From Klebsormidium nitens (Eukaryota; Plantae; Klebsormidiophyceae): a stretch of DNA of 64,000 nucleotides. The stretch lies in contig DF237075.1 in NCBI GenBank assembly GCA_000708835.1, forward strand, positions 98,956 through 162,955, read 5' to 3'. A model generated the notes under the pieces. It was not told the origin of the DNA, did no database searches, and saw only the letters and a program-made list of their open reading frames with translations. Shown in pieces: positions 45,037 through 58,346 of the stretch (position 1 is its first letter; every line of letters begins with the position of its first letter). A program made the position numbers and the translations under genes.

Positions 45037-45229
45037 CTCCAGAGCTGGATGTCACCCTCTCCTCACCCCTCAGGACGATCCTCCGTCAGTGGTGCAACCT
45101 GGATGCGCAATCTCCATCTGCAAGAAACGCAGAAGGGGCATCTGATCGCATCTGGTCCCCCCCCACACAACATTTCCCGCATAAAGCTGTGGCTTCCAAA
45201 AAGAGCGTGTGGGGGATTGCAAAAAACAG

Positions 45230-45301
45230 TGAAGACTAGGTGACTCGAACACCTAACCTTCCGATCTGGAGTCGGATGCACTGCCATTGTGCTAAGTCTC
45301 C
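45230..45301 (-). tRNA. tRNA-Trp(CCA), no intron
   Basis: Minus strand GGAGACT-TAGCACAATGGCAGTGCA-TCCGA-CTCCAGA-TCGGA-AGGTT-AGGTG-TTCGAGT-CACCT-AGTCTTC-A folds into a cloverleaf. T6 terminator at 45221-45226 and a TATA-like tract about 30 nt upstream. Confidence 0.95.
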
Positions 45302-51900: not shown

Positions 51901-52969
51901 TATTAGTCGGCCCAAGTCGGCCGCTTTATCCGATGAGTCCCTAGCTTCACCTGACGTCCGCACTGCGTCCGCGTCGATCCGCACATAGCTTGTATCTGTG
52001 CCGGGCGGCCGGGCGGCCGCGATGGGCGACGCATGCGTAGGCTTTGCCCGGCGGTTTGAGGGTTCTATCATCTATGATAATTGGCTGCGCGGCCGGCCCG
52101 GCGGCCCGCGTGCGGATCCCCGCGTCGCCCTGCCCTTGTGCTAGGCAGCTGCTCTTCAGTCTTCCTCAATGATTGCCACCAATGCCAATGGGACCACAGC
52201 GTGGCGGCTGATCTGACAAATCGTAGGGCCCATTGCAAGCAAAGCGATTTGTTCAGCTGCATAATTACAAACCTGCGTTCATCCCCAGCTTGAGACCCGT
52301 TTGGGTCACCAAATGGCGCAGCGTTTTGTATCTCCCTGGGTGCAATACTGATTACACCAGGTAAGGCCACCTTTTCGACCCTTCGAAGCGGCGTAGTAAA
52401 CGTGTGAAGGGGCTTTTAAGCATTAAAGTAGAGTGCTTTGAGTCAATCTCTTTCACCACCCTTTATCCCGTTTTCATCTACTCCTTCCTATGTACTTCAA
52501 TGGGTTCTGACACTCATGAAGCAGCACTCTCCACAGAATGTCAGGGGGAGAGGTGGTGCAGGTATTTAGCTACCTTCAGTGGTTGAGCTCGTTCTGTTGT
52601 GCCAGCATCACACTAAAGGCGTTGAATCACTCTCTAGAGTGGCACTTTTGCAATGAACAGAAATCCTTGATAACTGATTGGTCGCTGAAAGAAGTCTTGA
52701 GTTGCTGAGTGCTTCTCAGCGACTTGGTTGAAATATTTGCAGTCGATTGTGGTATGGAAGAAAATGTTGGTACCATCAAACCCAATTGTCTATCTCAAGA
52801 TGAAGGGCATTTTGCAAGGAGCTGGGCTGTTTGTCTATCAGGCTTTTACTTCAATAGAACCATTGAAACAAATAGTGTGTTTCAAGTGTTCCATGACAGA
52901 GTCCTAAAGATTTTTTGAGTCAAGGTACTATAGGAAAGCCGGCAAGCCCCCTGATCTCCACTGGAAGAG

Positions 52970-55900
52970 ATGGCCAACAGCCGGTATGAGTATGTCAAGC
53001 GCTTTGAGCTGGCAGATGAGCTTCTGCCAGAGGTCTGGATAGTCATACGAATCGACGGAAGGGGCTTCACAAAGTGAGTGCTTTTTGAGTGAGTTTGCAG
53101 CAAAATTTCAAATACTATGATGATTTGACAGCCATCGAAGACTCTGCTTGCTTTTGCCCGTCTTTCTTTCAGTTATTGGCTGTAAGAAAGGACTGCAGCT
53201 ACTTTTGACCAATCACGCCTTTGTTGGGTAGACCTGACATGTTGTTTTGCAAAGTGGATGTGGGGATTAGGAACCTGTCAGACTAGTGGAGATTGTGTAC
53301 TTGGTTGATTCTGTTGTGAAATATCCTCGAACGAACAACTCCACTCATATGATCACCGTCTGCCTGCTCAAGTTGACGGTGCTAGCGCGCCTGTGCAGAT
53401 TTTCACAGGCGCACGAGTTTGAGAAGCCCAACGACGTGAGGGCGTTATGTCTAATGAATGCGAGCGCCAAAGCGGTGGTAGAAGACCAGCCAGACTGCAT
53501 CTTTGCATACGGGGTAAGCGACGAGTACAGGTGAGACCCCTTGTCAGTCTGATGTCAGCAGTCATGGCTGTCAACCAGGCTTCGTTTCCAGAAAGGCGGT
53601 ATACTGGCAGGCATCTCTCTTTTTGCAGAGTTGAGCAAAGTCCGCCTTTTCCTGGTCTGGTGAACTCGAGATGGTCTCAGAGACCCATTTATATAACGAC
53701 TACAGGAAAGGGAAGCGCGGAGCAACGTTCTGAGAAAAAGTCCAGCTGCCAGGACAGAGATGCTTGACGGCTATGATGCAAACGTTCTGAAAGAAGCATG
53801 TGACGCTGTGCAGTTTCGTCTTGAGGAAGTCGACCTCCTTATATCAGCGTCGTGCCAGGTGAGGTTTCCAATTTGAGTCGCCTCTGACTCGGTCCTTGAT
53901 CGATCGAGGATTGTTGAAGTCATCGTCATCTTCTTAACCTTCGGGCTAAGCCTGAATCGACTCTGCTGGCTTTCGATCTGGCTATCGCTCCTTTCACCTC
54001 TAAACGTCCGACATCAACTTTACTAGGGATGTCATACCAGTCTGTATTTGGCAGAGAAACAGTAGGAAAGGGGTCGCGAGGGCGCGCAAATTAAGCAAAA
54101 TGCGGCGGCCCCGACGGCGTTCCTTGCATTGCCATTGGTGGAAACTTTAGTCGGTAGTGCGCCGACATGCACGGCCTCGTACAATTTACATCGACGGCGG
54201 CACACCGCGTCCCGTCTATAGGTCGAATGAGCGGTAAACCGTCCGATAAAGAAATCAGACAGGAAAGTGGTTACAATCTTGTATCCGTACAGCTCCTCCG
54301 ACACGTGTTATATTCCTTGAAACCCGGAACAGCTTGCATATTCCGTTATCACGGTTATGCATAAGGTCACAGCCCGTCTTACATTCAGTAAAAGGTTCAA
54401 GGCACTGAAATGACATTGTAGGGCTCTAATTTTAAACCTTTCAGTGGTCATATGAAATCCAAGTACCGGTAGTTCCAAATAAACCCGAGTCTGAAACCCA
54501 GTCTATGGAGCGAAATCTATCAATAGAACCAGTAAACCTGGGTCTTACCTAATCACTTCTACTATGGTATAAGAGGATAAATCCGGATATATTTGAAAGT
54601 ACATGACTGATAATATTGTAGTGTGTTACGAAAATATCATCTTGCTATCCAAAACAGCCCCTCTGCCCGGGCGTAATTCCAATTTTTTTGATAGAGAATA
54701 CTTCCTGCGTACTGCTCAAAGAGGAGGGGGGTGACCCTAAGGGATTACCACGGGCGTTTGAGGTGTCCGCTTCAAGATTTCCAGACAAGCCTCCGTGGTG
54801 ACTGGTTCATCACGAACCGTAAAAGCTTGCTGAAGACACCCTACTTTTCACAAGATCAAAGTTGAGCTTACCCTCCTCAGGTTTCGAGGTGTCCGCTTCC
54901 CTGCTTCCAGACAAGCGTCTGTCACGTGGCCCGTCTGCCACAGTCTCACTTGCTGTTCGTGGCTGCGATTGCTCGTTGCCTCTCCCTGTCCTTCACTGCT
55001 CAGCTCGGTGTCATCGCTTCTCTCCGCAGCAAGCTGGTGTCGGTGTTTGTCTCGTACTTCGCCAGTAACTTCGTCCACCGATGGCCCGACTTCTTCCCCG
55101 ACAAGAATCTCCAGTACCTTCCTGCATTCGATGGCCGAGCGGTCTGCTATCCGACGGCTGCTATCCTGCGGGACTACCTAGCCTGGCGACAGGTCGACTG
55201 TGAGCTGCTGTTTCCGAATCGAAAATAGGTTTTCGTGTCGACTGGAAACGTAACTATCTTGCTGTCTCTTTGGTTAAGTATCCCTTGAAGATGAAGAACT
55301 TCCGATTCACTTCGCGGCGTGTGCCTGCCCAATAAGATTCAGATAAACTTCTGACCCTTCTTTCGTGTGCCTCCTTTAAGGGCACGGCTTTCACAAGAAC
55401 AGATTACTTCCACAGCAGCACTCACTCTGCAGGATCCTGTCTCCTTAATCGCCACATTGATCCAGAATAGGAACCGTGCAGTCAATTTCTCCACATGACG
55501 CTTTCCAAGGTCGAAGCCAAACATGTTTGGAACCTAGTGGCCAAAACACGTTGAGTGCGATTTTCCGTCACTTGTGTCCAAGCATTGGTCAGATTTACGG
55601 TCTTTTACATTCCGCCCGGGCTCTCTTGTGCTGCAGGTCACATCAACAACCAGTACAACGCGTGCTACTGGGCCCTCGTCAAGTCTGGCGCCACGCCAGC
55701 AGAAGCGCAGGCCACCATCAAGGTGCGCAAGCAGTCTCTCCGACACGGTTCTGCCTCCTGATGTCCAGCAAACCGCTTTCCCATCTGGAGCAAGAGCAGT
55801 TTTCCGCTTTTCACTGAGCCCACATAAACCGGGGACGCGTCTCTGATTTGCTAGTTGAGTGTCTTTTGTGATCTTCCCCAGCGCGTGCAGCAGCCAATAG

Positions 55901-57338
55901 CCGTTTGGGCGGAAGTGCGGTCTTTTGCTGTGGGAATCTCTGTAGTCTTTGTTGTGGTCTGAGCCGAGTAGAAATCGCGCCTTTGCTTATGTACGCAGGG
56001 TACGCAGGCTGACTTCAAGAACGAGCTCCTCTTCAAGCGGTTCGGCATCAACTACTCTACGTTGCCCGCCATCTTCAGAAAAGGCACTAGCATCTACCGG
56101 AAAGAGGTGAAGGTGTCCCCGATCGTTTATGGCTCCCTCCGTAGAAAGGACGTCAATGGGACATGCCGTCGCTTCCTTCTTGACGCAACGCACTCTAAAA
56201 GTTGAGCCTCTGTACGGGAGGTGCCGACATTCTTGGGGCTATCGAAGGGTCAAAGCGTCAAGGGCTTTTTAGACAAACGACTTACAGAAATTTTCCTGCT
56301 CGAGGCGCAATCGGGCAGTGGGTTTTCGGAAGTGACGATTCGCGTGCATCCTCGCAGCCAGAGCTAGTGCACCGGGCTGTAGACCAACAAATTTAATGCC
56401 TGAACGCTTCTGCTACCCCTTGCATACGTTGAGTATCGGGAGATATCACCATGTGCACTCCATCTTGCTTCTCAATGCCTCCTCGTCCAACTCAAGGGTG
56501 GCTGCCGCTTTTCCTTTCTGAGTGCAGGTCCAAAAGGCGCCGCCAGCCAAGAAGCTGCGCATTTCGGGGCGTGGCGAAAAGAACACAACAGCTTCTTCTC
56601 CAAACAACGATTCGCCGCCCATGACCATGGAAGACAAGCGCAACCTGAGCATTGCCCTAGCCAACATGGGTCCGGACCTCTTAAGAGGAATCGTCGAGAT
56701 CATCAAGGAGCGTCACGCTGAACTTATCTCGAACGACGAGGAGCTTACGCTGGACATCGACGTCCTGGATGACGCCACGCTTTGGGGGCTAAAGCGGTAC
56801 GTTGAAGAGAAGGTGGAGGGGCCACGGGCGTCCGAGGAGGCGGGACCGTCCGTGCCACCAGCTCAGGTGAGAGGCTGGCTTCGAAAGCCTGCCATCGAAA
56901 TCTCTGTGCTCGCCTTCTCCTAGCTAGGCCCCGTACGCCCATATAAATAGGCGAAAAGGGAGCATAGAAGTCAAGATTCACTCGGCAATCTCAAATTGAC
57001 GTCATGCGCAAGATGGTAGGTAAGATGCGCCGTTTAGATTGCGCTTTGACATCGTCATGAGTTGTTTCTTGCTGAATGCTTGTGTCAAACGACAGCTAGG
57101 TTTATCCATTGCCTTGCCTTCAGTTTTCGAAGTCGGTTTCCGCTTGTCAATACAGCCCTGCGAGGAGAACGGAGAGCGGGCACAGCGGAGAAAGCGACAG
57201 CTGGTGGTCGATCATTGTGACATAATAGGGCCCAGCTTCTGGAAAGAAAACCCAATGTTGCTAGGTCGTGACTTCCAGCCGAGAGACGAGAGAGAGTCGA
57301 ACGGTAGCTCCCCAGGAACTCGGACACAAGACACATGA
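52970..57338 (+). CDS. THG1: tRNA(His) guanylyltransferase THG1 with an internal ET-domain exon
   Basis: MANSRYEYVKRFE..IVIRIDGRGFT|..FEKPND..AYGVSDEY|SFVLRKSTSLYQRRAS|KLVS..FDGRAVCYP..YLAWRQVD|CHINNQYN..|GTQADFKNELLFKRFGINYSTLPAIFRKGTSIYRKE (ends 56106), then the ET exon 56528-56866, then PCEENG..VVDHCDIIGPSFWKENPMLL..* (57156-57338). Both catalytic Asp positions are intact. Confidence 0.92.
56528..56866 (+). other. 339-nt phase 0-0 exon encoding an NLS-like PAKKLR and a NET/ET (extra-terminal) domain
   Basis: MTMEDKRNLSIALANMGPDLLRGIVEIIKERHAELISNDEELTLDIDVLDDATLWGLKRYVEE matches the BET/GTE ET consensus (MT-x-EK-x2-L..L..EI-x-LDID-x-L..TLW-x-L). Flanked by tgcAG and GTGAG. Confidence 0.85.
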
Positions 57339-58346
57339 GTCTCAAAGTAATTGCGGAAAGGCTGCCTTTTTCATGCCTGTCCGGTCTGTCGAGTGGCACT
57401 GCCTGCATCCACTGTTGTGTGCAAATAACGGAGAGGTTGGACGTTACCCATAACATATATAGAGCGTTGGAGATTTTACACCGCAATACTAGTTCATTCT
57501 TCGTATCCCTTTGTATCCCATGGCAATACGCGAGAATGCGACAATTGAACCATGACACATGAAGAGTAATTGCGAACGTAGTGGAAATTACTCTCCACGC
57601 TTATTTTTTCACATGAAGAGCGGCCAAAGAAACCTTTGGCCACTGGATGATCGTAAGTGGCAGCCTAGATACACCTGCAGGAGTTGAACTCGAGTAAGGA
57701 GCGTTCCTCCTTAATTACCTATGTCTCCTTCATACTTGGTGTGCCACGAAGACATGTACAAACGAGGCTTAACCGATCGGATTAGCCTTCGATCTAGCCT
57801 CCTAGCTTGCTTGAGTTTGCGACCCCCTAGCTGCATTCTGCTAAATTTTGAAGACCGCATATCTTTCTACTTGCAAAATCGGAAGCCTAAGACCAATGCG
57901 TCGAACAGGCCGAACATTCCTGGGCGTGTCCTTCCGTGCAATCACCAACGTATGAGTTTGTCACTTTCAAAACTTGAAATCAAACTCATTTTTCCAATGC
58001 ATGAAGTTTTGCGACGGCGTTTGTGACGAAGGCCTATGTATCCACTATGTCGCTATGTCTAAGGCGCAGCTCTCTAGTTCGCCGCTTGAGTTTTTCGACG
58101 TCCCAGCTTCATGACTGCTGAACAGCTCAAATGCATGCATGAGCCCATTGCAAAAAACAAATCGACCTGCCTGCAAATAGAGCAATCAGGCTATCATGTC
58201 ACATGCGACTCGAGTGCTTTGAAGTTTGCACTTCTTTGGGCTGTCCAGTGCATGTGCTCATTGCATTTGTTGCATCTGCCATCAATGCATCTGCTCTGGA
58301 GCTGGTAGGTACAGGTAGTGGTACTACAGGTACCGGTAGACATACG

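Follow-up and report, generated by a model that had tools for sequence, protein, structure and literature searches.

An exon that encodes an ET domain lies among the exons of the THG1 gene of Klebsormidium, raising the questions of whether it belongs to the THG1 message, where it was acquired from and what it could do for the enzyme. Thg1, the tRNA-His guanylyltransferase, provides histidine tRNA with its additional G. To our knowledge, no 3'-5' nucleotide polymerases are known outside the Thg1 family and, plant tandem duplication apart, Thg1 has been treated as a stand-alone enzyme. The gene is analysed here within the window, meaning the whole 64-kb stretch of DNA under study.

Structure and expression of the THG1 gene

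The + strand of the window bears an eight-exon THG1 gene with an ORF of 1167 nt (388 codons), every border of which is AG/GT. Its exons are the following:

52925..53073, + strand: THG1 exon 1 (CDS 52970-53073, ATG at 52970); Pfam Thg1 profile 1-30, AG/GT ends, ORF
53399..53530, + strand: THG1 exon 2, with the SDEY motif (catalytic D76, E77) at its end; RNA joint 53073>53399; Pfam Thg1 profile 31-73 (E-value = 6.7e-14)
53814..53858, + strand: THG1 exon 3 (45 nt); RNA joints; amino acids 100% identical in L001 and L004, two THG1 genes of other taxa described below
55030..55199, + strand: THG1 exon 4; RNA joints; Pfam Thg1 profile 90-130
55637..55722, + strand: THG1 exon 5, with the HINNQYN motif (H152); RNA joints; Pfam Thg1C profile 15-42
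55999..56106, + strand: THG1 exon 6, with K186 and the end ..FRKGTSIYRKE; final Thg1C segment ahead of the insert (Thg1C profile 44-78)
56528-56866, + strand: THG1 exon 7, the ET exon (339 nt, 113 codons); stop-free, AG before and GT after, phase 0-0
57156..57338, + strand: THG1 exon 8, the last (..RRKRQLVVDHCDIIGPSFWKENP..), with TGA at 57336-57338; joint 56866>57156; 3'UTR to at least 57519

An intron is also present in the 5'UTR at about 52362-52924 (GT..AG), as contigs of the RNA runs X17 and X1 carry 25 nt corresponding to 52335-52359 before 52923. For the RNA check, 20 candidate runs matched, and contigs of four of them were sought on 52800-57700; X19, X17 and X1 (three runs, three studies) provided them, and X20 gave none. 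Both joints of the ET exon, 56106>56528 and 56866>57156, were found in contigs of all three runs, and the five remaining THG1 introns are likewise spliced out there at GT..AG, seven in total. One X19 contig of 1158 nt extends from exon 2 to exon 8 and the 3'UTR with the ET exon included, and an X17 contig of 705 nt comprises the ET exon, the last exon and the 3'UTR. Intron-bearing contigs are present in the same runs at a much lower word depth and are probably pre-mRNA. Because the contigs show the introns removed and the ET exon joined, the three runs represent RNA and place the ET exon in the THG1 message. A processed DNA retrocopy was considered as the source of the spliced contigs and was ruled out (intron-bearing contigs much thinner, seven GT..AG joints in three studies). 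The 339-nt ET exon is a genuine coding exon of THG1, included in every assembled transcript seen. The original prediction, made from the letters of the DNA, had given the coordinates and phases of exons 6, 7 and 8 exactly, as well as the AG/GT ends and the freedom from stops of exon 7, and the two junctions by which it proposed to assign the exon to the THG1 mRNA are those recovered from the three studies.

Pfam and PDB searches were done exon by exon. The Pfam Thg1 domain was detected on exons 1, 2 and 4 (profile 1-73 and 90-130) and Thg1C on exons 5 and 6 (profile 15-78), each above the cut-off. Exon 6 aligns to CaThg1 186-219, ScThg1 184-218 and HsThg1 chain residues 181-212, and exon 8, which is without a Pfam match, aligns to HsThg1 chain residues 239-268 (E-value = 3.6e-4). 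The spliced ORF keeps D29, D76, E77, H152, K186 and HINNQYN; H152 and K187 are active-site residues of human Thg1 (PMC8127990). Judged by its sequence, the 388-aa product is a eukaryotic-type Thg1 with its catalytic residues intact. It shares with canonical Thg1 (S. cerevisiae Thg1 and human THG1L; PDB 3OTB, 7CV1, 3WBZ, 5XOX) the Thg1 and Thg1C domains, the catalytic carboxylates, H152, the equivalent of K187, HINNxYN and ..HCDIIG..FWKE... Canonical Thg1 is, however, a single module with solved chains of 243-277 residues, whereas the product of the window adds 113 residues between Thg1C position 78 and the final strand.

Some further features of the locus are recorded here. THG1 intron 3 (53859-55029), of 1171 nt in the window, is shorter in both L001 (331 nt) and L004 (387 nt). 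An X1 RNA contig of 1965 nt matches 54048-54737 inside this intron and continues into unlike sequence, and X1 has loose ends at 54048 and 54683, which suggests that intron 3 holds a copy of a dispersed, transcribed element; a second copy of it was not found within the window. Near the 3' end of the intron there is a 40-nt direct repeat (54757-54796 and 54883-54922, 80% identity, spacing 126 nt). A tRNA-Trp (CCA) gene is located at 45229-45301 on the - strand of the window.

The ET domain and its place in the enzyme

The insert corresponds to protein residues 216-328 and consists of two disordered linkers flanking a complete ET domain:

56528..56620, + strand: N-terminal linker (protein residues 216-246), Lys/Pro/Ser-rich, holding PAKKLRI; pLDDT 48-58; dN/dS about 1
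56621..56812, + strand: ET domain proper (protein residues about 247-310); Pfam BET; three helices and a long loop with the ELTLDID strand
56813..56866, + strand: short C-terminal linker (Gly/Pro/Ser), ending ..PPAQ at the GT donor; low pLDDT; junction PPAQ/GTGAG common to the bromodomain-ET gene L002

The Pfam profile BET (PF17035) aligns with its positions 1-63 of 64 to exon residues 31-93 (E-value = 8.2e-20; 71.1 bits against a cut-off of 24.5), and the ET exons of the THG1 orthologs score 73-76 bits to it. With Thg1 and Thg1C matching the THG1 exons, the profile search proposed along with the original prediction thus returns both modules of the protein. The PDB sequence matches of the ET exon are the ET domains of BRD4, BRD3 and BRD2 (E-value = 1e-6). 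An AlphaFold (AF2) model of the exon, built on 40 aligned ET sequences, places helices at exon residues 34-46, 49-62 and 82-96 with a loop at 63-81; pLDDT is 74-87 in the domain, and the linkers are of low confidence. Foldseek with this model ranks the ET domains of BRD4, BRD3 and BRD2 first, led by the BRD4 ET entries 2NCZ and 2N3K (target TM 0.75-0.77; rmsd for 2N3K 1.9 A over 70 columns), followed by Taf14 ET and AF9 AHD (ranks 8-17). Pfam, PDB sequence matches, AF2 and Foldseek therefore agree on the complete ET domain that had been read from the exon.

The peptide-binding cleft of BRD3 ET is formed by L592, V596, I599, I616 and F618 together with the EIEID strand, in which acidic and hydrophobic residues alternate and which pairs with peptides of binding partners (bioRxiv 10.1101/2020.09.21.306696). 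By alignment, the equivalents of these five residues in the window are L, V, I, L and I, and the strand reads E-L-T-L-D-I-D, with T for the middle E of the E-L-E-L/I-D-I-D found in relatives; the L004 domain has A for the cleft V. Since the cleft residues and the acidic strand have counterparts in this alignment, the peptide-binding surface looks intact. A second motif lies in the N-terminal linker, where A-K-K-L-R of PAKKLRI (56546-56560), 20 residues upstream of the ET domain, resembles the LKIRL and IKLKI strands bound by BET ET domains. PAKKLR had also been noticed in the original prediction as resembling a nuclear localisation signal; the stretch is indeed there, but this reading loses ground, as it sits in a neutrally evolving linker and has been conserved in the window and L001 alone, KKLRI being absent from L004 and L005.

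In proteins of the BET/GTE family, the ET domain is preceded on its N-terminal side by one bromodomain or two. The THG1 ORF encodes no bromodomain, and tblastn of the bromodomain-ET protein P0002 against the 64-kb window matched the ET exon only, with no bromodomain encoded; the earlier observation that no neighbouring bromodomain gene could own the exon is thereby borne out. With no bromodomain in the ORF or in the window, the THG1 product is an ET-bearing protein and not a BET protein. It has in common with BET/GTE proteins (BRD2/3/4; P0002, P0151) the fold, the cleft and the acidic strand and, with P0002, the exon end. Those proteins, however, are chromatin readers with a bromodomain, while the host in the window is an RNA-processing enzyme without one. 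Taf14 and AF9/ENL (YEATS with ET/AHD) likewise carry an ET-like module outside BET proteins that docks short motifs, although they are distant in sequence and weaker structural matches, and their hosts are chromatin readers, not enzymes.

Within Thg1, the insert sits between the ..FRKGTSIYRKE strand and the ..QLVVDHCDIIG strand and replaces a variable stretch. In HsThg1, the C-terminal region is a flexible beta-hairpin beside the tRNA elbow; in CaThg1, it is helical in the free enzyme and disordered once tRNA is bound; and in the archaeal TLP (MaTLP), it forms a hairpin that binds the tRNA elbow (PMC8127990). From the alignments of exons 6 and 8 to the PDB Thg1 chains, the ET module probably hangs from the loop of this C-terminal hairpin and leaves the active site untouched. 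Both these alignments and the published structures (PMC8127990) locate the insertion point in the flexible C-terminal part, in line with the length-variable region named by the original prediction.

Origin and conservation of the ET exon

Searching 1.84 billion representatives with the ET exon, HMMER gave 359 matches at an E-value of up to 0.001, the best 150 of which were listed. Among the matches listed, five are close relatives of the ET exon (62-73% identity), followed by ordinary bromodomain-ET proteins at 48% or less. Three of the five close relatives are ORF fragments inside THG1 genes: L001 (Logan SRR23617307), L004 (JGI 3300060285) and L005 (Logan SRR14092358). All eight THG1 exons with AG/GT borders are present in L001 and L004, where exons 1-6 equal those of the window in length and the ET exon occupies the same place in phase 0-0, with 339 nt in L001 (ORF of 388 aa) and 351 nt in L004 (ORF of 394 aa). 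The partial L005 has exons 5 and 6 and the ET exon, in the same place and phase. The remaining close relatives, as well as P0151, are encoded by bromodomain-ET genes. A bromodomain is combined with BET in P0002 (531 aa) and in P0151 (545 aa), and P0003 is a fragment; P0002 and L001 come from one sample. A protein search with the ET exon itself returned P0001 only, and one with the ET region of P0002 (lengths 292-929 aa) returned P0002 and P0151 only. Of different nature is P0006 (655 aa), an unrelated protein among the representatives, in which a single bromodomain is accompanied by two ET domains of identical sequence and, at the end, by a CAMSAP/CH-domain fragment; its architecture is either unusual or the product of a fused gene model.

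When 76 ET domains were placed in a tree, the THG1 copies (four) and the bromodomain-gene copies (three) grouped together with 100/100 support, the stem of this clade measuring 1.13 substitutions per site. In the comparison with bromodomain-ET paralogs proposed earlier, the THG1 copies thus join those of their own lineage. The protein tree gives no resolved order inside this clade, and the DNA tree separates the four THG1 copies from the others (74/77) and pairs the window with L001 and L004 with L005, a pairing that matches the divergences of the Thg1 core. A single origin of the THG1 ET domain appears in 26% of the protein and 78% of the DNA bootstrap trees. Every THG1 copy is identical to the P0002 domain at 51 of 64 positions, and the latter looks like the slowly evolving parent.

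DNA homology between L001 (6051-6389) and the bromodomain-ET gene L002 (7137-7457) amounts to 70% and covers nearly the whole exon, including the upstream Lys/Pro-rich stretch, stopping about 8 nt beyond the common ..CCAGCGCAG/GTGAGCGG donor. In the bromodomain gene, the homologous piece is the end of a long ORF. Because the homology ends just past the common donor and the piece ends a long ORF, the 3' part of the exon was copied into THG1 intron 6 along with its donor. Specifically, about 340 nt from the 3' end of the ET-coding exon of a bromodomain-ET (GTE-like) gene, together with the GT donor, were duplicated into the intron, where a new acceptor was recruited; in the window, the acceptor of the ET exon follows a pyrimidine-rich tract (..tttcctttctgagtgcag). 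The identified donor, the symmetric phase and the exon-confined homology show exon shuffling by duplication from the lineage's own bromodomain-ET gene, giving a source to the shuffling that had been proposed for this exon. The capture probably took place once, in the ancestor of the four sampled taxa, and gene conversion or repeated capture of the ET piece may also have occurred.

Between the window and L001, introns align only in short pieces, and the ET exon is 81% identical without any indel. Core synonymous divergence across the four taxa reaches 1.3-1.5. By the Nei-Gojobori method, the Thg1 core has a dN/dS of 0.03-0.04 and the linkers have one of about 1. The ET domain lies between them, at 0.16-0.33 in five of the six ortholog pairs (bootstrap intervals below 1), and is 5-10 times less constrained than the core. 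The sixth and closest pair, L004 and L005, has an ET dN/dS of 0.82 (95% interval 0.27-3.8), compatible with neutrality. The frame, phase, splice sites and predicted fold of the ET exon have evidently been kept by purifying selection, weaker than that acting on the enzyme. A separate observation concerns L004 (6043-6393) against L005 (1982-2332), in which Thg1 exons 5-6 are protein-identical, yet 13 of 64 ET residues differ (dN 0.107, dS 0.131); L004 also shows a cleft change from GIV to EIA. This divergence could be a relaxation or an adaptive change on that branch.

Role of the ET module and its significance

Thg1 is a tetramer, and the enzyme would therefore carry four ET domains. BET ET domains use the cleft and the acidic strand to bind basic/hydrophobic peptide motifs. 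As both have been conserved and differ little from their counterparts in the donor gene, the module would be expected to dock on the same motifs as the ET domain of the donor. In this way, tetrameric THG1 would be brought onto the short linear motifs bound by the bromodomain protein, gaining a nuclear or chromatin-associated tether, and tethering to nuclear partner proteins is the most likely role of the module. As a whole, the account that we consider likely is that of an expressed and selected THG1 with an ET domain copied once from a bromodomain gene and putatively serving to tether the enzyme to partners.

Other explanations have to be weighed against this account. An exon lying outside THG1, as intronic debris, a nested separate transcript or an assembly artefact, is hardly conceivable, given that spliced contigs from three studies join it to THG1 on both sides and that the same arrangement occurs in three independent assemblies of other taxa. 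It is unlikely, though a good deal less far-fetched, that the ET piece is a tolerated passenger, exonised in a permissive loop and slowly decaying with no specific role. The insertion site is the most variable and often disordered part of Thg1, the linkers evolve at a dN/dS of about 1 and the L004/L005 ET domain at 0.82, and the THG1 copies evolve faster than the donor ET domain with a lower GC3 (0.72-0.86 vs 0.91), all as expected of such a passenger. Nevertheless, frame, phase, splice sites and a full Pfam-length domain have been kept in four taxa despite the core synonymous divergence given above, five of the six ortholog pairs have an ET dN/dS (0.16-0.33) significantly lower than 1, and the residues of the cleft and the acidic strand are retained.

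The two other alternatives, both improbable, assign the module a different function. The exon could be a facultative cassette, with a skipped 275-aa form as the housekeeping enzyme and the ET form as a minor or conditional isoform, along the lines of the skippable cassette proposed in the original prediction. The symmetric 0-0 phase of that proposal holds, so that skipping would keep the frame and yield a Thg1 of canonical length. Against it, the three runs, each of a different study, yielded inclusion junctions only, no contig connects 56106 with 57156, and the contigs with the ET exon are no thinner than their neighbours (a rough hint, as depth is per contig). Contigs drop rare variants, and for this reason the absent skip junction is no proof of absence and a minor in-frame isoform of 275 aa may exist. 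The chances are similarly small for a cis-acting regulator, in which the acidic ET groove would bind a basic/hydrophobic stretch of THG1 itself or of the neighbouring subunit, or would adjoin the tRNA elbow, thereby gating the binding of tRNA or the assembly of the tetramer. Two stretches are candidates for this. KKLRI of the linker resembles the BET-ET-bound LKIRL/IKLKI and, in the window and L001, precedes the domain by 20 residues; the other, RRKRQLVV, opens the last exon. The hairpin region, moreover, contacts the tRNA elbow in HsThg1 and MaTLP. However, KKLRI is absent from two of the four taxa and its linker is neutral, and RRKRQ is an ordinary feature of Thg1, basic in human as well.

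The THG1-ET protein is a real, expressed and conserved new architecture of two known modules, so far restricted to one algal lineage. We found no paper on Thg1 with an ET domain or on Thg1 with Klebsormidium, and none relevant on Thg1 with a bromodomain, and the Thg1 section of a 2023 tRNA review mentions no accessory protein-binding domain. Searching from the ET side, none of the best 150 of 359 ET relatives among 1.84 billion representatives showed Thg1 similarity, and a scan of metagenomes that used the ET exons of the four THG1 genes met just three distant ET loci (33-38% identity), all of them lacking Thg1 exons. The statement of the original prediction that no Thg1-ET fusion was known accordingly stands in the literature and in those best matches; as the searches ran from the ET side, an independent fusion may exist elsewhere. 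The nearest comparison in the green lineage is Arabidopsis Thg1 (At2g31580/ICA1, At2g32320), which also departs from the single-unit architecture and is nucleoplasmic, with the whole unit tandem-duplicated (PMC2995067, PMC4423873). It has two Thg1 units and no reported ET domain, whereas the gene of the window has one unit and an ET domain. Arabidopsis ICA1 has cell-cycle and DNA-damage phenotypes (PMC4423873), and an interaction of Thg1 with ORC in yeast is cited in the same paper.

THG1-ET represents a clean and datable case of exon shuffling, in which the donor gene, the acceptor intron and the inherited splice donor are all visible. The tolerance of the Thg1 C-terminal region for a whole inserted domain is useful for tagging and engineering. 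The fusion also offers a handle on the debated nuclear or chromatin-linked roles of Thg1 beyond tRNA-His identity, of which the ORC interaction in yeast and the ICA1 phenotypes have been earlier hints, as any protein bound by the ET module becomes a candidate for a physical partner of Thg1. A more far-reaching and rather doubtful possibility is that the fusion acts as a 'Rosetta stone', with Thg1 at chromatin, coupled via ET-binding motifs to the transcription or replication machinery and sharing the partners of BET/GTE proteins, such as subunits of TFIID or of remodellers. If so, G-1 addition or the 3'-5' repair of other RNAs would be co-transcriptional, and behind the roles reported for Thg1 in yeast and Arabidopsis (nuclear, ORC-linked and cell-cycle) there would be a real and conserved interaction, hard-wired by Klebsormidium into a single polypeptide.
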